Shown piece by piece: positions 14,244 to 57,733 of a DNA stretch of 64,000 bases. The position numbers were made by a program, and so were the translations under genes. Origin of the DNA: Botryllus schlosseri (taxonomy: Eukaryota); the NCBI GenBank assembly GCA_051294905.1, contig CM119378.1, forward strand, positions 8,122,001 through 8,186,000, written 5' to 3'. The stretch's first letter is position 1. Every line of letters starts with the position of its first letter. The notes beneath the pieces were generated by a model. The model made no database searches. It worked only from the letters and a program-made list of their open reading frames with translations, and had not been told where the DNA came from.

Positions 14244-17200
14244 TCATAAATTGACGAGGCCGCCGTGCTCCGATTGGTCCGGCGTCCGAGGCTCGCACGG
14301 CAGTCTATTGTGCCTCATGTGACTCCTCACCAAATGCCCCGCGCTGAGAGCAGCCAGTAGCGAAAGTTCACTACAAAGAACTGTGCCGCAAACGATGCTG
14401 GCAAACTGTCTCGCGTTATGGCCCGAAAGCGCATTCTCCACACCGCTACTACCGCCTCCCAGCCCGAGCATGTCAAGGCAAGCGCGTTGCGCATTGAGCG
14501 CTGTACCACCGCCACATGTAGCAACTTCTATGCACGGCATGGTACATGTAATAAGGAGTGACCCATCACCACCTTGCGTGCTGTCAAGTTTTTCAAGGAG
14601 AGTGATGCAGTTGCTTCCCTCCACATTTTGTGCAGGATCTTGACCAGTCGCTATATATAGAGCCGTTACGGCGTTAGCTGCGTGTGCGTTGAATCCGCCT
14701 ATGCTACCGGCCATCGCAGACCCTATCAGGTTCTTGCTGGTGTTCAGATGAACGAGAGAGTCCACATCTGTTTTCAAAACATCTCTCACAATGTTACTCG
14801 GAATTCTAGCTTCCGCAACAACGCTTTTTCCTCGGCCTAACGTCCAGTTGATCGACGACGATTTTTTGTCAGTGCACACATTGCCGCTGAGACTAATAAC
14901 CCTCATGTCAGGCCGGATGTTTTCTTGCAGCCACCTGCAAAAGAAAAATGCGGGATAAGCCACCGAACTTCGGCAATGAGAGAAATTCGATTACCAAAAC
15001 TTCTAGCAAAGAATTCAGCCCTCTTGAAACTACCTGTTGTTGTAAGATGCTTATTGACATGATAAACATTCAAGTGTACTGGTGCGCGCTTCGTACACTG
15101 CTGCACAATGAGTCAATGACATCATTAATTCTGCTGTTCCACAAAATGTAGTTTTCTTAGTATCCTGATTCGGCTCGAGCATACCCAATTCATTATTCCC
15201 AAAGGTATGCGGCAATGGATAGAGGCGTATGCTAGGGTCGTAATCTTGAGAAAAAATTTTAATTTCAAAAAGTTTGTTGACTCATCGGCTTTCACGCATA
15301 GTTGATCTTTCATTCTATCGGTGTCTTACAGAATATCAATCCCCAAAATTCCCCACACAGCTTAGGGCCTCTGATCATGTTTACATCAACAAAGCAATAC
15401 TTCTTTCATTCTATCGGTGTCTTACAGAATATCAATCCCCAAAATTCCCCTCACAGATTGAGGCCTGCGATCATGTTTACATCAACAAAGCAATACTTCT
15501 TACGAGAAATTCATTCTACCATACAAAGGTAAAATGGTATATTGAAAAAAAATAATTAATTTCACGTAGAGTTGAGCATGATATATTACAACTGCTTAAT
15601 TGATTAGAGCTATTATGATATTAGACACGTTGAAAAATGAACAGAAAATCAACGTCGGCTGAATTGCCGCAAGACCAAAGTTCTTCAGTTGCTGATGCCA
15701 CTTTAGCGCTTATGAATTAGGGGGGAATCTTGCACATTTTTATTGAACCGAACGCTGTTTTTAAACACTATATTTTCCATCCTACATTGAATATAAGAGC
15801 GAACAGATTGCCCAAACAATTTTTTTACAAACTTAGTCTATATCACTTATCACTCAAATTTCACAGCATACTTTAATGTGTGCTCTACGCCTTTAGACAC
15901 CATGTTCATCCCCATCGCATCTCCCGTCGTGGCGTTGAAACGAATATACAAACTCCTTCCACAGACCATTGGATGAATCGATTCTAAACGTGCGAAGCGG
16001 CTGGTTTCGTCAAATTTATCCTTGAGCAGTACGAATTTAAAAGGGTCTTTCAACCATCTGGAAATAAAGTAAAGTGTTTGCAAATGAATTGGCAGATGTT
16101 AGGGGTGGTCAATAATTACTCTGCCATTTCACAAGCCTTTCTTGAAGTTGGGAATTCAACCACTGGGGCTCTAGTCATCCCATCCCGATACACGGTGCAT
16201 TCAACGCCACCAGACAGCAACACCGCCTAGTATAAACACAAAACTTCACTAGCAAGTTCAAAATGTATAATTACACTTTCTACCTTCATCCCACGGTTGG
16301 TACTTGCTAATAACGTGCCTTCTGTCGTTGCCATCGGAACATGATACGGATCACCATTCATAAGTAAAGGACCACAAACACCAACAGGCACAGGAATGTA
16401 CCCGACAGTGTTTTCACAACAAGCCGCTGTAGCTTTGCTGAAGTTGTAATGAGCAAAAGGTATCTGCGCCAATGCATCCTGTCGCTCTTTGTATTCAAGT
16501 TTTTGATGAAGAAGTTTCCTGCAAAATATGGGGTCAGTTCCATAGAAATTGATTGTTATAAATACAAACAGAAAGATAACCACCTTCTAATGCTCACACC
16601 GCGGTTCGGGTCCCGCAAATCCACTTCCAGTCTATGGGATTGAATTTTCTTTGCCTGCACAAGACTGATTATTTCAAGATCCGTCAGTAGATCTGAATTG
16701 TCTTGTAGAAGCGCAACACATGTGTCTAGGTCTCTCGGGGCACATTCCGTTGGGTCCGGATCTATATGAGCTGAGTAATCAACAGTTTGCTTAGCGTTTC
16801 CATAGGATACAAATTCAGTCACTTGTGCAGACTGTGCAACCTCGATATTTGAATTTTGAAGAAAAAACTTTCCAAGCAACAGCATCGTGATGATCAGTGT
16901 GAAAAAATGTTGAGGAGTCATTGTAAAAATCATGTCAAACCCTTCTTGGAAGTTTTCACCATGATACAGAGATTCTCCGTAGAAGAGTCGTATGCAATTG
17001 AATAGCAGCAATAAACATCCTATCATCAACTTGAGCTTGAATCTGATCTGTCCGCCGTGATTATACAGAGCTTTTGAAAACGTTTCATTGTGCCACACTG
17101 GCTTTGAGTTCCGGGAGCCTCTCCTTGTGTTCATTAGCAGTATTGAAAGACATGCTGGTACAAATGTAGTAAAGACGATGTAGTTTAGCAGGACGGACAA

Positions 17201-17839
17201 ACAAGCAAAACAGAATATTTCCTGAAGTTGCCGAACTTTCATTGCACTACTCATCATGATAACAAATATCTCTAATACCGTATCAAAAGTGATTGACGGT
17301 CCAATGACTCTCATCGCCTCTGAGATTCGATCCTGGACAGCGTTGTAAGAATGGGCTGTCAAGCAATGCTGGATTAATGAGACAAGCCTTGATATATCCA
17401 CCGAGAGCAGAAATATTGGTAAAGCAGATCCGACGACAATCCAATTCTTTTGCATAAGCTGCAGCAGGGTGGCCGCAAATACGATACTTCCAAAAGTCAT
17501 GCATATACAAACGCCCATGACAAGATGAACAGAGCCCAATTGGTTAATTCTTCGAAGCTTTATGAAAAAGTATATGATGGTGACGCATCGTAGTAATGAT
17601 AGCAGCACGGCATCGCTATTTGTCCGAGTTGGAAGTTTGTCTTCATCAACATTTTGACATTCTATGGACCATTGGCAAAGTTCAAACGGGCTGTGTAAGT
17701 TGAGCGATACTGCTCCAACAAACATGGTCAAAAAACAGACCATGATTTCAAGAGAATAATAAGCACAGAACCGGCCATACTTTCCAAACACGTCCATAAG
17801 AGGAAAGTAATGTCCCTTTGACTGCTGAATGTAGTCCAT
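14244..17839 (-). CDS. HMGCR: 3-hydroxy-3-methylglutaryl-CoA reductase (class I, with membrane/sterol-sensing region), 5 coding exons, 824 aa
   Basis: Exons 17839-16584, 16518-16284, 16226-16120, 16057-15872, 14934-14244 (2475 nt). Motifs [48 protein letters not shown]. Confidence 0.96.
15307..15498. repeat. Two-unit 96-bp direct duplication in HMGCR intron 4
   Basis: CTTTCATTCTATCGGTGTCTTACAG... starts at 15307 and again at 15403. Confidence 0.85.
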
Positions 17840-48849: not shown

Positions 48850-51460
48850 TTTGTTCTCATCACGAAGCCATATATTTGAGTTCAAGTTGGTAACGGTAGC
48901 AAGATGGTCCAATTCGAGACGAATAGATCGGGTTTACGTATCGAAAGTCCTATCCATCACCACGAAAGGATGTGAATATAAGATCAATCCTATATCCGAT
49001 CATAATTACTTCATGGTTGTAAAAATAGAAAGTAGAAAGCAACCTAGTCAACAAAAGTGTGTACACTGTACATTAGGGCTGTTCAAAATAAAAACTTTTC
49101 CTTCAAATTTCCCTGGCTGCTTGATAAAATTGTTAGGTTGGTTAAAAAAACGCTGCACACCAACTTTACCTCAATTCCAACCAGTAGAAGCTAGATTCGT
49201 GTAGTAGAAAGTTTTGAATAAAATTTCAAAATTTTTCGGTCAACTCTGTCCCGTCTGGGCTCTGAATGAAGTTAGCGTGCCACACAGTGAGTAGGCTGCT
49301 GATGGTAGCTCCGCGCTGCTTGATCCTATTCTCCCCGCCTAGGCACAGACTTGTTTAATAAACCAGATTTTGTCTGTATTTCAATTCAAGATCAGGAATA
49401 GTTGTAGCAAACTTGTCCCGTAAAGAAGATCTCTCTGTATCCTGACTGAAATCAATATGTCGTGTTGTGCCTTTTATGTGACTGTCTGTATTTGACCGGT
49501 ATTTGTATGTATGCTCGTTGTGGATTTTATTAAAACTAACACGATAATGAAAACATATTGTCATATTGCGATGTCTTACAACATAGGGGTTAGTATGTAT
49601 GCCAGAAAGCAACAACGATTCAGGTAGCGATACAACCGAAAAGCGGTTGTAAGCTGCAGTCAGGAGAGGATTAATGGACGGCAACAAAAGGGTTAACGAG
49701 GCTGCAGCTGAAGTGCGAAAATTGTATCCTTTGAAACATCATTTTGACATCGTATGCGCATGATACGCCGAGCGATCGCTTCCAATTTTGTTGACTGGGA
49801 AACCAATTGGGGCATAGGGACTTGAAGGAACAAGACGGCACATTTTCATAACGGAAACTTCAAAGCGACGATCGGAAATCTCTGCAATGAGTTCAGCCTT
49901 CGTAAATACGAATTCTACAGCCTAAGAGAGTGGTGGGATAACCTGAAACTTAAGATAAAACAAGCCTCAATAACCTACGGCATAACCGAAACAAAGAAAC
50001 GTTCCGACTACCAAATAAATAAAAAACATCAAGAACTAAAAAACCCGAACATAGCACCTGAGAAAAGTAAACAGATAATCAAGGAATTAAAAGAGATCGA
50101 AAAAGATAATATGAATTTTCATATGACACTCCACTATAGAGAGGAAATAAAACAGGGAGACAAAACCAGCCACACCTTCTACTCTAAACTGGAGAAGAGG
50201 AAAACCAACAAAGTTATCATGCAACAGCATAACACCAGAAGTGGGTTGAGAAACCAAAGAACAGTCGAAGATATTGGGCACCACGTGGGAACCTGCAATA
50301 GCCTTTAGGGACGAACCTTCTACGAACCGAAAGAAGAGAGACAGGAATTAATCGAATGTCTACCAGAGAGCCTCACTAAAGAAGAGGCAAATATACAGGA
50401 CGGTACGATCACGCTAGACTGGCTGCAGGAACTGCAACTTGTCGTTTCGTCGCAGCATAACAGCCGGTCACCAGGGCTAGATGGAATAACGACCGAATTC
50501 TGCAAGACCTTCTACTACTTGATCAATAACGACCTGCTTATCTATAACAATGCAATCGCATTTTCGGGAATCGCAAAATCCTGCGGTGATTCTGCGGTAA
50601 AGCTAATATACAAAAAAGGCGATCCGGAACACCTAGAGAATTGGAGACCGGTTTCACTTACTAATATAGATTACAAAATACTTACCAAAATTATCGCAAA
50701 TAGGATGAAGCAGGATATGCCGGGCGTAATCGGGCAGCCTGAAAATATTGAAATAATAGCAAGACAGAAACTAACCAAACAGAAAAAAGGAGGGTTGGAA
50801 ATACCGCATTTACAGGCAAAAACTAAAACATGTAAACTGGAAAATATTGGAATAACAGCGAAATTAAACGAATCAACAAAACTTTGGCACCACCACAAAC
50901 TATACCTATTACGACCGACTATCAGAAAACGGAACAGAAATCCTTTCACAAATAATATGCCACACAAAACTGATCTAATAAAAGAATGGAGAACATGATA
51001 GCAATCTATGAAGACCTGGAATGATAAATCGAAGAATGGAAAGAAGCAGCGCATAAAGAAATATACCTAGCTACGAAAAAACTCTACACCTAGCCTACAC
51101 CAAAGCTGCAATAGAGACAAATTGGCTGCAAATACACAATCCATAAAGCCTAAAAGATTTACGAAGTAGTAAAGAAAAAGTAACTAGCTACCGAATCGCA
51201 AATGACGGCTACCTCTTCGGAGCAAAGAGGAAGGAAAAATATATATTAAAGACAAGTACAGGTGACATAGCAATCACCGAGTGTAGACAATGCGGAAGCC
51301 AACTGGAAAGAGTGAAACTCATTGTATACGATTGCCCAACAGCGCAAAAGATATTCGAAAAGCCAAGTCGCATCACCGAAGGGGATCCAATTGAACTAAA
51401 AGAAGCTAATGTCATAAAGAACGAAGACACAGAAACCAAGAGATACCAAGCTAGAATAAT
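48850..51460 (+). pseudogene. Decayed Tx1/L1-clade LINE ORF2 (APE endonuclease end, partial RT, C-terminal Cys knuckle)
   Basis: SRRIDRVYVS...ISDHNY (48910-49010); WWDNLK; SPGLDGITTEF; LIYKKGDPEHLENWRPVSLTNIDYKILTKIIANRM; KGGLEIP; CRQCG...YDCP (51330-51360). Many stops and an internal RT deletion. Confidence 0.82.
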
Positions 51461-51468
51461 ACTCGCAG

Positions 51469-51720
51469 GTGGCGAGAGAGCGTAGTGGTATAATCCACTG
51501 CTGCAACACCAATGGGTTGCGGGTTCGAGTGCGACCGAGGCGCTGGAGGTTTATCTAGACTCCTCCTCGCCATCTCATCCGTACAAGTGGTGTCTTGTAA
51601 AAAGCCTATAGAACTGGGTCGTGCTACAAGTCGGGAGTTACGGAATATAAATGAAGATTACCGGCCTCGTGTAAATGACCATAGTAATAGTCGGCAAACA
51701 CAATGAATACCACAAAAAAA
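51469..51720 (+). mobile_element. tRNA-derived SINE copy
   Basis: Same head and body as 33506; short duplication ACTCGCA at 51461-51467 and 51722-51728. Confidence 0.8.
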
Positions 51721-52254
51721 GACTCGCAATATATAAACAGAAAATGATATAACATAGGAAAAAGTAGATCAAGAAAATCAGATGTCACAAAATAAAGAAG
51801 TAGTCAAAGAGATCTACAATCAAACATGTAGACCTCTAAAAAGTAGACTAGTACTAACAAATGAGCAAACAAATGAACTTGAACTTGCGTTGAACTCACC
51901 TTGAATACTTTACGTTTCCGCATCATCATAACCTTGAGAAACTTCAAGTTTTCGTACAAAAAAAAATGTGGAATAAAAAAAGAAATAAAACTATGAAAAC
52001 GCCATATCAACAAGTATGATATACGGAGAGCCGAAAAAATTTTAAATTTCGCTCATGCGCACCCTTGTTTATTGAAAAGATTTTTGGATATGGCAAACAA
52101 AACAACTTGCGTTGTGATCGCCGATCAAATATAATCAACAACAACAACCGGGCGAAACCACACAATTCGACGATAATTTATTTCTAAAACTGCGACGTTC
52201 GGTCGCACCCAAATGATTCAATGTTTAATCCATCACACACTCAATTTAGAAATT

Positions 52255-52724
52255 GAATAGTATATTCATATTGAAATAAACCCGAATATTTTCGGCTGAC
52301 ACTCGTCAGGGGAAATCGTCAGCAACTAGTAGAGAATTGGAAAGAACATTGTATATCAACAATCGTATCGCAAAATATGACGTCACCAGCATGAAAGAGA
52401 GAGCGTTCAATGTACTATTTTTATGTGGTACACGAACTCCTTTTGTTGGCAGAGTTTTGGTTGGTTTATTTTGATAGAAGTCGACTCCAAGGCACACAAA
52501 TGGAATTGTGAACGGCCCCGTCCAACGTACATTGAACGCTCTCTCTTTCATGCTGGTGACGTCATATTTTGTGATACGATTGTTGATATACAATGTTATT
52601 TCCAATTATCTACTAGTTGCTGACGATTACCCCTGACGAGTGTCAGCCGAAAATATTCGGGTTCATTTCAATATGAATATACTAATCAAATGTATATTGA
52701 AGTTCTGTACCTCAAAGAAGCTCT
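52255..52724. mobile_element. Penelope-like fold-back insertion with an intact hammerhead motif (52629-52662, +) and an inverted one (52280-52313, -)
   Basis: The inverted arm extends into the GIY-YIG ORF end (reverse complement reads LESTSIKINQPKLCQQKEFVYHIKIV); 14-bp direct repeat TCAATTTAGAAATT at 52241-52254 and 52725-52738. Confidence 0.85.
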
Positions 52725-53413
52725 TCAATTTAGAAATTAGAATTTGAACGACTGGTCGGAATGTCGGCACAATAGCGCGTCTAAAAGAATTTATCGTGTG
52801 ATAGCCATCGAAATATATCACCGATTTCAGTGTTTTTTACCAGCCAAATGATATCGCACATAAGAATGTATAGTAAGCTCGATACACCCTGTTGAAAAGT
52901 TTCTAGCCGATACAAAGCCTGGCACTACAAACAGCGGCGATGAGGTTGGGTGCATGGCAAAAACAATAACTAATTCCGGGGAATGCTATGCTCGAGACTT
53001 GAAAAACTAAATCGTGTTTCCATTTCAGACAAATTTACATTCAGCAAATCCGAATGAACGTTTTCGTTGCCAATATGGCAACGGTATGGATCCTATGGTG
53101 ATGGGCTTCAGGTGTTTCGGAGAGAATGGCGAGATTCCCTCGCAACCATGCGGATATCCGGAGCAGACGACCGGCAACAGATTCACGAAATCCGTAGATG
53201 TTACCCGATCACACAAGTCATCGGATAAGTATTTACGAATGAAACAAAACCTTTTCAAAGTTCGCAAGTTGCTCTATTCAATACAATGTTTATGTTTTAC
53301 GATCAGGCGAAGCCACTGACGTATCAGCCGGAATGTTGCCTTGTAATATACCATTGGAGTGGTCCTCAGTACAGTACACACGTTTTCAAGGAAGTTAGCA
53401 TAGGCGGAGAGGC

Positions 53414-54133
53414 ATGAACCGAAGAAACTGTAACGGCGAAACCTCCACGTTCAGGCAGAAACTGCGTCCTCGTCTGCCGTCGGGCACTAGATATCGAGAC
53501 GCGCGTCCTTACCAGAGAAGACAAAAAAACACCGAACATACTCCTCAAGCAGTGGACGCGTGTGCGGATAGTATAGCGATGATGCAAATTCAAAATCGGC
53601 GGGACCAGCTTCTCCGACAAGTTTCCTCCAGAGAAGTCATTCCTGTCTCCGTTGGCGAGAGCGACGCGATTGTGACGCGTCATGACGAAATGCCTCATTT
53701 CAAATGTGAAATCGCCCATTATAATGACGGACGGAAATGGACCAAAAAGGGCAGACGGGTGAAACTCGAGTTAACTTTGAAGCAAAATGTATATGTACGG
53801 GAAGTAGTATCCCATAATTTTCGCGAACAGCCATATCTGATGTTTGCCTTCGTAGAAGCCGATGACTGGTACTACGTTACGGTTAATGCGAGAAAAAGAC
53901 TGATCACCAAACGTGCTGATAAATTATCCGCTGCGGATTACACTGAAAAAAGTTATTTTTATCTAAGCATGGATTCTAAAGCAGGACACGGTGGATATAT
54001 TTTAAGTTCGCGAGCTTATAACGGCTTCGCCATCACTGTCAATCGACGAGATCGGCTAGAGCTCACTGATAACCCCTCGCAGTGGAACAAATGGGACATC
54101 CGAAAAAGTGATGTAACCGATATGCATACGTAA
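53414..54133 (+). CDS. Putative beta-trefoil cytokine-like protein (IL-1/IL-18/FGF-like), 239 aa; may extend 5' via an exon ending at 53228
   Basis: Longest non-transposon ORF outside the known genes. Three-fold strand pattern, IL-18-like Y.D...KG..V.L.L, IL-1-signature-like EKSYFY...LSSRAYNGFAITV, no signal peptide. Recognised by eye only. Confidence 0.58.
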   Translation: MNRRNCNGETSTFRQKLRPRLPSGTRYRDARPYQRRQKNTEHTPQAVDACADSIAMMQIQNRRDQLLRQVSSREVIPVSVGESDAIVTRHDEMPHFKCEIAHYNDGRKWTKKGRRVKLELTLKQNVYVREVVSHNFREQPYLMFAFVEADDWYYVTVNARKRLITKRADKLSAADYTEKSYFYLSMDSKAGHGGYILSSRAYNGFAITVNRRDRLELTDNPSQWNKWDIRKSDVTDMHT

Positions 54134-54764
54134 ATGTGATATTATTGCTTGGACAAATGTATTTCCTACGGCGGATTCAAGTAAGGTCTGTCTATGTAAG
54201 CCGCTCTGGGACATATTGCGAATATCCCTCGACAAGGCCCTTCGAAGTAGTTTTCGGGGTTGTCTTTGTAGAAATAGGAGCGTCAAACGAGCTGCTTATA
54301 TCGCCCCGCGACACAGCAATTTTATCACCGGCCGTGGTCTACATTTACAAATCCGACGCAAAACGTACGGTAGCCATGGCGCATGCTGAATTGCTGGTTA
54401 AAAGAGTTTTTCCAACAAATTGCCCTACCAGCCCAACCTTATTGATTGCTATTGCAAACATTGTTACACGTTCTCTGTACCATTTGGCCTTTTTGCATAC
54501 TATGATGTGTCGCATTTTTACAAGCTCATTAATTGGATCAGTTTCGAGTATTGTGACGGTTATATATAATTCCAATGATATTTGACGTATAGAATTATCA
54601 CTAACTCGTGCAAATGATTTCTCCTTATCGACAAAAGTTAAGGGGACCACGTGAACTGAATCTGGAAAATAAATTTGATTGGACTGTTTTTGGGTCTGAT
54701 TTTGTAACTTTTGCTTTTATTTTCTTTTGTTTCTTTTACCTTGCAACTACCAAGGAAATGTGTA

Positions 54765-55033
54765 GGGAGATAGCTGTGTGGGTTCGAGTCCGCATGAATG
54801 CGTTGTGGGTTCGAGTTCGACCGAGGTCGACTCGAGAATTCTTACCTAAGTGTTGGAGGTTTATCTAGGCTCCTCCTCGCCATCTCATCCGCGTAAGCGA
54901 TATCTTAAAAAGCCTTAGAGAAGTGGGTCGTACTACAAGTCGGCAGCTACGGAATCAAAAACTAAGAAATATCGGCCTAGTGTAAATTACCATTGTAGTC
55001 GACAAACACCATGAATACCACAAACAAACAAAC
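54765..55033 (+). mobile_element. tRNA-derived SINE copy with a rearranged head (two B boxes)
   Basis: GGTTCGAGTCC at about 54781 and GGTTCGAGTTC at about 54808, followed by the family body and (CAAA)n tail. Confidence 0.8.
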
Positions 55034-57435
55034 CAGGGAATTGTAAAACACCCATCAAACTCAAACGTAGTTCTAGTTTCATTTACAAGTTCCCTTCAGT
55101 TCGGTTTATATTAGCAATTTTTATAAGTTCAATACACCACAAAAATTCGATGCAATGAAAAGATCAGAAGGTGTCGAAACAACATAGAGTACAGTATTTG
55201 GAATCAGACACCCACCTTATCCTAGGCGATGTAAAGAGGAGGCATGTACACTGAATGAATAGTAAAAGAAGATAGTATAATAAAAAGCAAGGGTCAAAAA
55301 ATGCCGGCAAGAAAATGTCCTCCTTTTGGGTACTGAAAATATGGTAGACATAATATCAGCTATCAGATACCAGTTGCTTGCATGACCTTTGACCACGACC
55401 AGTCTAGACTATCTCAACGGTACTATCTCTGAAAATGCAGTAACCCACATTATCAACTCACAACTGCATATGTGGGGGGAGTGGCGACGGCTGGGCTACT
55501 GTGTAAAGCTGAGTTGCACTATTACTGAACATCGCTCCTATTTAATCGAAGACCTGCATTAGGAGGCTGTCATAGTTATGACTAATGTGACTCAGTGAGC
55601 TGCACCCTTCGGCGTTTGCGGTTAGCACGAGAGGATAACAGGGAAAGGTCATAGCAGTTGAAGCTCGATTTATGTCAATCAACAATGACCTACCTCTAAA
55701 TGTCACTGCCGTCACTCGCCTGTTAACGAGCGGTGCTGTTCGCCAATTAAGAGGAAGTGCGATTAGTTCGGTTGCCGTGCTACAGTATTAGCATTGAAGA
55801 CGTCGGTTCTAAAAATCAGTAACAGTCCATAATTATGTGAAATTATGTGATGCCTCGCAAAAAACAAGCTTTCTTGACAAAATCTGATATTAAGTCATGA
55901 AATATCGGCCAAGGATATAGTCGTTAACAAAATGATAGGCGCTGGTTTGCTCGTCCATTATAACGCATCTTATAAGTAGGGATGAGCACAATGCTTCGAG
56001 TACTCGAATCCGAATCGAGCATCAATTGTAAAGAATCGAGTCGATTGGCGAGGGACGATTCACTGAAATTACACGTCTCCCGCAAAGCTGCTATGGTTAT
56101 TTTATCAGAGAGAATCATAGTTCCGATACTTTTTTCTTGCCGTGGAAGCCTCGAAACCATCCCTGCATTCCGAACCTGTAGCGCAAGTCCGCCCGTGTTG
56201 ACGGAAGCTACATTTTAGTGATTAAGCAGTAACATTGTCGGCCGGCGAAAGTCTCCAGAAACGTATCAAAAATATTGATAAAATGTGTACTAAAAATCAA
56301 ATTACTGCAAGGACTTGATTAAACTTTTTCCTGATACATTTCACCAAAGTTACATTCTTGCTACACTATTTTTATGTCATTGCCGGCGCGATAGCCCGAC
56401 ATCAAGGCCTACAAATTTTGAAAGGTTTCAATTGTTTCAACTGCTAAGCATCACGGACAGTCAAAACGGGAATGACGTAATTCGGATCACGAGTGAGATT
56501 TTAGATTGGTCACTCCAGCAAGTTCATTACTATTAATGCTGTACTTAGAAAAACTAATTCGCGTGTGTGTTAGGTAGTTTCGTTTTCTGTCTAGTGTAGA
56601 AGTATTTATATTTATATTATATATACATTTTACAAGCGTATTCGAAGCAAACATTCGGGCTATGATGCAATCAGCTTTGTGTTTCCTGGACGCTTGACTT
56701 GAACCAAAAGTAGAATCAGCAAATCTACGAACATATCGCTGTTCTCAGATTCAAATGTCCGCCCTGTTTTAAGATTCGGAACCACTTATACTTTAATCTT
56801 TATTTTTGACAAATTGGTTACTGAGGTCGACCAGCTTATAAAATCTCGATAATGTGTCTGACGCGTGAACGTTGTCATCAAATCAATGTTGGGTGTGTTT
56901 TAAATATACAAATATATTATATCCATGTACTCACTATATAATCAAATACCAATATTGCGTTTTGGTTTATAATCCCAATTTTATATAGTACAGCCCGCGA
57001 ATGGATTTAAATGTTGATTGCGACCCGCGAGCTAAAAAGTTTGCCCACCCCTGTCATAAAACCTTTTTGAAACAGACATGGTTAAAAATACCAAATAACG
57101 TTGCAGTGTAACTGATTTTATTTCATTTACGTTCCTATGAAAGTTACATCTTGAACTATCCATGTCATCTATGCTATTATGACGTCATCGATAGTGGTAC
57201 CCGAAGACTATATTCAACTCGAAGTCTAATACTCGATTCACCCAGGCACACGTTTTTGACCTGCCCTACTTAGAACTATGGCTGGGCAGAATCGATTACC
57301 TGAGTGATTCGATCCTGAATCGGATAGTATGCTTCTGGTCGAGTATCCGAGTATCACACGCTATCACGTCATGACAGTATGGTAGATGTGGAAAGCTGAA
57401 ATATGTACCTTTTCTGCTGCCACTAACAATATAAT

Positions 57436-57733
57436 GGTTGCCCGACATATGAGCATGCGACACAATGGAAAACGACAGTTCAGCATGGAACACATCAGCA
57501 TGCGTCACTTCAGCATGTGACTGTATAACCCAAAAACTTACCCTAACCCGAAACATAGCCTAACCTAACCTAACCTAACCTAACCTAAACCCTAACCCTA
57601 ACCCAACCATAAACCTAACCTAACCTACCCCTAATCCGTAATTTAACCCACATGCTCATGTGTCGCATGCCAAATTGTCGCATGCCGAAGCGTCGCATGC
57701 TGTAATGTCGCATGCTCATATGTCCACGGACCC
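57436..57733. mobile_element. GG...CC-ended MITE (Merlin-like) with GCATGCGAC subterminal repeats and a (CCTAA)n/(CCCTAA)n core
   Basis: Inverted ends sharing GACATATGAGCATGCGAC; 8-bp TSD AATATAAT at 57428-57435 and 57734-57741; inserted in a TAGGGCTGGGCA-family MITE. Confidence 0.78.

Follow-up and report, generated by a model that had tools for sequence, protein, structure and literature searches.

Does the genome of an invertebrate, Botryllus schlosseri, hold a gene for a leaderless cytokine precursor of the IL-1/IL-18 type? The question is raised by one open reading frame (ORF) in a stretch of 64,000 nucleotides of contig CM119378.1 (assembly GCA_051294905.1, positions 8,122,001 to 8,186,000), hereafter the window, for which an initial annotation had proposed a 239-residue pro-cytokine with a caspase-type cleavage site ahead of a beta-trefoil. 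We find that the ORF, located at 53414-54133 on the plus strand of the window, is a genuine intronless gene that is weakly transcribed, and that it is very probably a real gene for a leaderless beta-trefoil protein. The trefoils that it matches best are IL-18, IL-33 and IL-1, but family membership fails on sequence and gene structure, the glutamate of one signature motif is absent, and true descent from the IL-1 superfamily appears possible though somewhat doubtful. We class the protein as a sequence-orphan variation on leaderless trefoils of the IL-1 type. Unless otherwise indicated, positions given below are those of the window, and the features of the gene are on its plus strand.

The ORF finder returned an ATG-initiated frame of 239 amino acids plus stop, as initially annotated, with a product of 28 kDa. 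Its translation contains all of the peptide strings that had been quoted for it, namely AVDACADSIAMMQIQNRRDQLLRQVSSREVIPV, IAHYNDGRKWTKKGRRVKLEL, EKSYFY...LSSRAYNGFAITV, YYVTVNARKRLITK and FAITVNRRDRLELT. The coding sequence is uninterrupted, as indicated by the ORF itself, by homology along a relative from another organism, designated P0001, and by the mapped reads, among which no spliced reads or joints were found across 53414-54133. The proposed beginning of the feature at 53083 is unsupported: upstream of the ATG, the same frame stays open for no more than five codons (244 open codons altogether), which places 53083 outside the coding sequence, and the contig that covers the gene in sequencing run X7 begins at 53368. 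This run, of unrecorded kind and with 66 Mb of contigs, provided a single 550-nt contig over the gene (53368-53880, depth 9), the 5' end of which lies exactly at 53368, with a fold-back joint there; the unique flanks (52762-53321 and 53994-54777) are uncovered. This pattern fits RNA rather than whole-genome DNA. Further, the 31-mers shared with several small runs are almost all within the ORF. In X24, recorded as RNA-seq and of which 6% was read, about five reads map to 53434-54665, with none in the unique flanks and none in the bin after the one ending at 54665.

An initiator-like TCAGT (53366-53370) provides, with its A at 53368, the putative transcription start. A TATA-like TAATATA (53344-53350), recognised by its resemblance to the consensus, lies 18-24 nt 5' of this position, somewhat nearer than the canonical -30. 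At the other end, the putative 3' untranslated region (54134-54690, the end coordinate being approximate) carries an AATAAA at 54668-54673, the sole signal of this type within 54100-55100, and the X24 reads stop just there. These features are best accounted for by a single-exon mRNA of about 1.3 kb that was very scarce in the samples covered, for which the evidence is thin but coherent. Weighing on the other side, the second run, X28, has zero reads on the gene, and the two RNA runs mapped show very little expression. A further RNA run, X21, from organism B, had no mapped reads whatever and so carries no weight in either direction.

The ORF is more than a chance frame because it has a clear relative and four intact paralogues. 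An exhaustive HMMER search of 1.84 billion cluster representatives returned P0001 as the one and only relative (35% identity, E 4e-29), a 369-residue protein from a Logan contig of 3,481 nt. A word-indexed search of 5.8 billion proteins gave nothing with the ORF, P0001 alone with a two-sequence profile, and nothing with a six-sequence profile, and a scan of metagenome contigs found no relative. Similarity between the ORF protein and P0001 extends over the entire C-terminal domain, the S-x-EVIP segment ahead of it and the N-terminal motif KLRPRLPS. The two-sequence profile built from both produced a weak match (E 0.013) in the same genome, on contig C12, which when followed up led to four more uninterrupted ORFs, three of them in tandem on C12 (L002, L004 and L005; G000:C12:5920978-5936748) and one on C2 (L007; G000:C2:8856756-8857559), all intronless. 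These four paralogues share 19-23% identity with the window protein, and their homology is backed by profile-profile comparison (hhalign probability 96.5%, E 1e-9, 131 columns). The window gene itself is single-copy on its contig, C8, its diverged paralogues being elsewhere in the genome. Across the six proteins, P77, C98, W109, G113, F144, W152, D169, F182, W227 and I229 are invariant. Synonymous divergence (dS) is saturated between most paralogues, and every frame is intact; the ratio of nonsynonymous to synonymous divergence (dN/dS) between two older copies is 0.17, an approximate value with dS saturated at 2.9.

A non-functional locus, that is, a decaying or chance ORF or a part of a mobile element, would account for the repeats around the gene (at 52253-52689 a fold-back element, and at ~51490-51600 and ~54800-55340 SINE-like copies, resembling short interspersed nuclear elements), for the thin RNA support and for the dN/dS of 0.71 between the two youngest paralogues, which are about 86% identical. 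We nevertheless regard it as highly improbable, with an ORF that is single-copy at its locus, five paralogues that all keep open frames though dS is saturated, a 35%-identical homologue in another organism that keeps the motifs, and a coherent predicted trefoil. The genes constitute a real, fast-evolving, lineage-restricted family, to which this genome contributes five members and P0001 is the one homologue known from elsewhere.

With regard to the fold, modelling and structure comparison leave us strongly confident that the C-terminal domain is a beta-trefoil. AlphaFold2 (AF2), supplied with an alignment of the six sequences, predicts this fold for residues 95-232 (53696-54109), with ten strands resolved (approximately 95-102, 126-131, 141-148, 151-157, 163-167, 181-186, 195-199, 205-209, 215-218 and 227-231) and two further ones inferred in the low-confidence region 107-121. 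At the level of prediction, this agrees with the C-terminal 12-stranded trefoil of about 150 residues that marks the IL-1 superfamily. The model of the domain alone has a mean predicted local distance difference test score (pLDDT) of 54.4 and a predicted template modelling score of 0.50; this low confidence, and the fact that three of the five models are worse, count against the IL-1-like reading, and an AF2 run on the full-length protein with two sequences yielded no confident fold (pLDDT 33). Comparison of the model with 48,161 PDB representatives by VIA-align, a search independent of Foldseek, placed beta-trefoils in all of the top 50 positions, and the Foldseek matches listed from the PDB were trefoils in 50 cases out of 50. 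The language-model features of three family members all led to trefoil families as well. The model is weak, yet as a prediction it is unambiguous as to fold. The beta-trefoil of the initial annotation accordingly survives for the C-terminal 140-165 residues or so, as a prediction from AF2 and the structure searches, whereas the IL-1 membership attached to it is not proven.

Two hairpins had also been put forward as repeats of a three-fold symmetric trefoil. In the model they are symmetry-equivalent (strands 6-7 and 10-11), and they align weakly with each other (local score 31 vs 19.7 +/- 4.1 for shuffles, p ~0.02), the hairpin of the first repeat reaching p ~0.07 vs shuffles. No internal repeat is seen by BLASTP between the three pseudo-repeats or by hhalign self-comparison (off-diagonal E 0.41).

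Which trefoil does the domain most resemble? The nine best Foldseek matches in the PDB comprise IL-33, IL-37, IL-1beta and IL-36Ra, and a structure search of Swiss-Prot gave IL-1 superfamily members as 21 of the 30 top matches. In the wide VIA-align search, the top 11 include IL-36gamma (9.1), IL-1Ra (8.9), IL-1alpha (8.3), and IL-33 and IL-37 (8.1), with fibroblast growth factors (FGFs) at 7.5 or below; in the alignments of this program, residues 3-5 of mature IL-18 pair with ORF residues 90-93. The features that the ESM language model assigns to the ORF, with no structural model involved, score 0.93 against IL-18/IL-33 clusters (180-182 of 256 features in common), compared with 0.85 (about 95 of 256) against lectin and inhibitor trefoils. 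The trefoil of P0001 behaves in the same way, IL-18 being at rank 1 (0.93, 184 of 256). The layout of the protein is also IL-1-like, since it is leaderless and carries an N-terminal extension, or pro-region, with the trefoil at the very C-terminus.

A number of observations weigh against reading this likeness as IL-1 membership. E-values reach 2e-3 at best, which is marginal; the HA33 and SeviL lectin trefoils stand within about 1 Z unit of the IL-1 family in the wide search; and the cluster matches from AFDB are a mixture of FGF, ricin, fascin and IL-1 that does not discriminate between trefoil families. The language-model 'recognition' value of 2008, being lower than 2300, weakens the high scores, and the paralogue subfamily has its best language-model matches with ricin-B, clitocypin and CCL2 trefoils, not with IL-1. 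In sequence searches, neither the ORF, its domain or P0001 nor any of the four paralogues had a Pfam match at E up to 10; PF00340 had no match in the whole genome, as expected for an invertebrate IL-1; and phmmer with three profile searches against PDB sequences returned noise only (Ig domains from titin and obscurin and, at E ~0.5, a symmetric designed trefoil). A structure search of the ESM-Atlas with the model found nothing but multidomain bacterial proteins with trefoil modules. The IL-1-like reading of the initial annotation is partly supported, with IL-18 first among the structural and language-model matches and no sequence or profile link to PF00340.

The strand-9 motif and the gene structure weigh in the same direction. 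Members of the IL-1 superfamily (IL-1/IL-18/IL-33; PF00340 and PF15095) carry signature motifs F-x-F in strand 8, F/L-E-S in strand 9 and PG/WF in strand 10 (PMC12108812, PMC13736523). The modelled strands 8-10 of the ORF protein read YFYLSM, YILSS and FAITV, with F182 invariant; at the F/LES position, the ORF has ILS, P0001 has ILK, and the paralogues have either LIP or LIQ, the glutamate being absent. Moreover, the ORF and likewise all four paralogues are uninterrupted, in contrast to the multi-exon trefoils of IL-1 genes.

A rival reading is a cytoplasmic or nuclear non-cytokine trefoil, for example a leaderless lectin, a protein of protease-inhibitor type or a scaffold, whose likeness to IL-18 would come from domain size and from the bias of a low-confidence model. 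We take this to be a serious contender, if not a probable one. It sits less well with the Pfam scans, in which neither a lectin nor an inhibitor family was matched up to E 10, with the lack of a detectable (QxW)3-type internal repeat or of a PF00652/PF14200 match such as ricin-type proteins have, and with the roughly 182-184 of 256 features that the ORF and P0001 have in common with IL-18 clusters, as opposed to about 95 with lectins and inhibitors. We also know of no leaderless lectin with a long basic N-terminal extension. An intracellular trefoil resembling FGFs or FGF-homologous factors (FHFs) is a further candidate: FGF17, FGF18, FGF8 and FGF2 occur among the Foldseek matches, and FHF proteins are leaderless with N-terminal extensions. 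We found no PF00167 match in Pfam and the nearest structures are not FGFs, and we judge this origin improbable. An affinity to the IL-1 superfamily, chiefly to IL-18 and IL-33, is the reading that we pursue below.

As modelled, the 239-residue protein is composed of three parts, a basic and disordered N-terminus of about 90 residues, a conserved pre-domain segment and a C-terminal trefoil of about 140 residues, with some 94 residues ahead of modelled strand 1. The initial annotation was right to describe the protein as devoid of a signal peptide and basic at the N-terminus, because hydropathy is low (over residues 1-40 the 12-residue Kyte-Doolittle mean peaks at -0.38, and over the whole protein the 15-residue mean peaks at 0.85), leaving no hydrophobic N-terminal stretch, and the isoelectric point of residues 1-72 is 11.3. 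This region (53414-53629) is predicted to be disordered, with pLDDT below 45 throughout. It includes KLRPRLPS (residues 16-23, 53459-53482), followed by Y-R-D-A-R-P-Y, a motif that emerged from alignment and BLASTP with P0001, in which it is identical at eight of eight positions. In the 230-residue N-terminal region of P0001, a module of the type KLRP(R/K)L...D.(R/K)PY is present twice, and this duplication suggests that the module is a functional unit. KLRPRLPS...RPY resembles a basic PY-type nuclear import signal, and the RxRxxS within KLRPRLPS resembles a kinase site; both suggestions are drawn from the motif sequence. Closer to the trefoil, a conserved segment comprises residues 66-83 (LLRQVSSREVIPVSVGES; 53609-53662), in which P77 is invariant in six of six proteins and model pLDDT is low. 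Together, this segment and the KLRPRLPS...RPY module imply that the extension carries a function of its own.

The extension was also where the caspase-type site had been placed, at AVDACAD (residues 46-52, 53549-53569), about 43 residues before modelled strand 1. The register then adopted, AVDA/CAD and SIAMM...RRD against YVHD and APV...LRD of IL-1beta, would have the trefoil begin at residues 53-70. It falls outside the trefoil, because modelled strand 1 starts at about residue 95, residues 3-5 of mature IL-18 pair with ORF residues 90-93, and residues 51-67 form a helix in the first, full-length model (two sequences, pLDDT 33). Going by the models, the proposed register is probably wrong. 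The aspartates of the extension are at positions 29, 48, 52, 64, 84 and 91. Asp84 (GESD/A) and Asp91 (RHD/E), at 53663-53686, are the nearest to the point where the mature N-terminus of IL-18 aligns; as alternative candidate processing sites, they appear better placed than D48 and D52 for releasing a trefoil with a short N-terminus. D52 and D91 are kept in P0001, while D48 and D84 are not.

Taken together, we infer that the protein may work like an IL-1-superfamily pro-protein, a proposal that we put forward tentatively. It would be made in the cytosol, from which the basic N-terminus would perhaps direct it to the nucleus, as in IL-1alpha and IL-33; nuclear pro-forms would then parallel IL-1alpha, IL-33 and several proteins of the invertebrate IL-1anc family presented below. 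Damage or activation would lead to release outside the secretory pathway, with trimming ahead of the trefoil, for which Asp52, Asp84 and Asp91 are candidate cut sites, and the freed trefoil would engage a cell-surface receptor. The more specific possibility that the family forms an invertebrate branch of the IL-1 superfamily, IL-18/IL-33-like, intronless and PDZ-less, apart from the published IL-1anc genes, seems to us unlikely. If true, the deep IL-18/IL-33 lineage, or else an offshoot of IL-1 that arose as a retrogene, would predate the vertebrates or lie outside them, and the genes would offer a compact five-gene family for testing leaderless cytokine release and Asp-directed processing. 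If the IL-1 reading is right, these genes would be a second kind of invertebrate IL-1-type gene beside IL-1anc, nearest to IL-18/IL-33 and bearing on the origin of both. Should that reading fail, they would still represent a sequence-orphan, lineage-restricted family of leaderless trefoils with a strongly conserved basic N-terminal motif, useful for annotation and of modest general interest.

Genomic context and candidate receptors were considered as well, since IL-1 superfamily members signal through Ig-domain/TIR receptors and are induced in immune responses. About 20 TIR exons were detected genome-wide, and no family member has one within 1 Mb; the exons either lie on a different contig or are separated by more than 1.8 Mb. 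A TIR cluster on C13 (3075887-3093673, minus strand; L023-L025) consists of three tandem multi-exon genes with leucine-rich repeat (LRR) exons, a transmembrane segment and a TIR domain, and is of the LRR type, that is, TLR-like; in-frame stops occur in two of the three TIR matches. The microsynteny known for IL-1anc was not recovered, which weighs against an IL-1 assignment: GCC2, ESD and a putative IL-1R are missing from the family loci, TRAF3 not having been searched for. No GCC2-type GRIP domain is near these loci, the closest GRIP domain being 336 kb from the C2 paralogue, and ESD is not linked to them. The genome's single strong match to ESD (PF00756, S-formylglutathione hydrolase/esterase D) is on C7 (3716287-3717036), in one 283-codon frame that is apparently intronless. 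The large open frames sampled in some 20 kb around the C12 and C2 paralogues correspond to ankyrin, Harbinger transposase, Myb/SANT, TMEM161AB and CHD1-like proteins. An ankyrin-repeat gene is upstream of the C12 paralogues, a Harbinger-type transposon (DDE_Tnp_4 and a Myb/SANT ORF, L019) lies between the second and third of them, and a TMEM161AB gene adjoins the C2 paralogue.

The surroundings of the gene in the window are rich in repeats. The fold-back element at 52253-52689, about 680 nt 5' of the putative transcription start, has two 163-nt arms that are 96% complementary and 111 nt apart, each with CTGACGAG...CGAAA-like hammerhead core words; Rfam at the gathering threshold gave no match over 50-58 kb of the window, this element included. 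The high RNA-seq depth at its right edge is explained by the element being a repeat family. The SINE-like copies on both sides of the gene carry a tRNA-type B-box (GGTTCGAGTCC) and a common tail, GGAGGTTTATCTAG.CTCCTCCTCGCCATCTCATCC, and reach very high depth in RNA runs and contigs; ARAGORN called no tRNA at these copies. Further upstream, ~50000-51500 looks like a decayed non-LTR (long terminal repeat) retrotransposon, with a strongly A-rich strand, an AT skew of 0.36 and a reverse-transcriptase-like frame at 50519-50998. Downstream, 57559-57627 and 57651-57724 hold an interstitial (CCTAA)n array of about 13 copies (TTAGG on the other strand) and, adjoining it, a 15-nt tandem repeat. On the minus strand, 14244-17839 contains large exons of HMG-CoA reductase, identified by eye from the translation, with a 427-residue exon for the N-terminal membrane region (sterol-sensing type) and a 239-residue frame for part of the catalytic domain.

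How, then, does the family compare with known systems? The view of IL-1 as restricted to vertebrates, on which the interest of the locus had been founded, is out of date, and the presence of IL-1 outside vertebrates, its main claim to exceptional status, is already published (PMC12338702, PMC13736523). Fontenla-Iglesias et al. (bioRxiv 2025, PMC12338702; Nat Ecol Evol 2026, PMC13736523) defined IL-1anc by structure prediction as a PDZ-plus-trefoil family that is found throughout Eumetazoa, with a small PDZ-less subset, immune induction and nuclear/cytoplasmic localisation. One of its members, the sea urchin SpurIL-1.3, is without PDZ; its pro-domain is uncharacterised, and a CARD-caspase cleaves it at Asp184, upstream of the trefoil (PMC13736523). 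In IL-1anc genes the trefoil is divided among 3-5 exons, with two intron phases that are kept across IL-1 genes, and IL-18 and IL-33 are only distantly related to the other IL-1s (PMC13736523). The present family is similar to IL-1anc in being an invertebrate, leaderless, IL-1-type trefoil beyond the reach of ordinary sequence search, and many IL-1anc proteins have disordered N-termini resembling nuclear localisation signals. It differs in having no PDZ domain by Pfam, no introns and no literal F/LES, which again speaks against kinship, and its loci lack GCC2, ESD or IL-1R-type neighbours (with TRAF3 left out of the search). The family is thus set apart from IL-1anc on the published description of the latter.

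From vertebrate IL-18 (PF00340), the protein is distinguished by the lack of significant sequence or profile similarity, by the absent F/LES glutamate and by its intronless gene, and its basic N-terminal extension, at about 90 residues, is much longer than the 36 residues of IL-18. Compared with marine-invertebrate lectins of the SeviL type (6lf1) and with ricin-B trefoils, it displays no detectable three-fold sequence repeat and no Pfam lectin match, and in this family the domain is larger and preceded by a long basic extension. With respect to IL-33 and IL-1alpha, nuclear targeting is here suggested by the basic PY-like motif, no chromatin-binding motif having been identified. Nonetheless, all have in common a basic N-terminal region ahead of the trefoil and no signal peptide, and IL-33 is among the top Foldseek and language-model matches of the protein.

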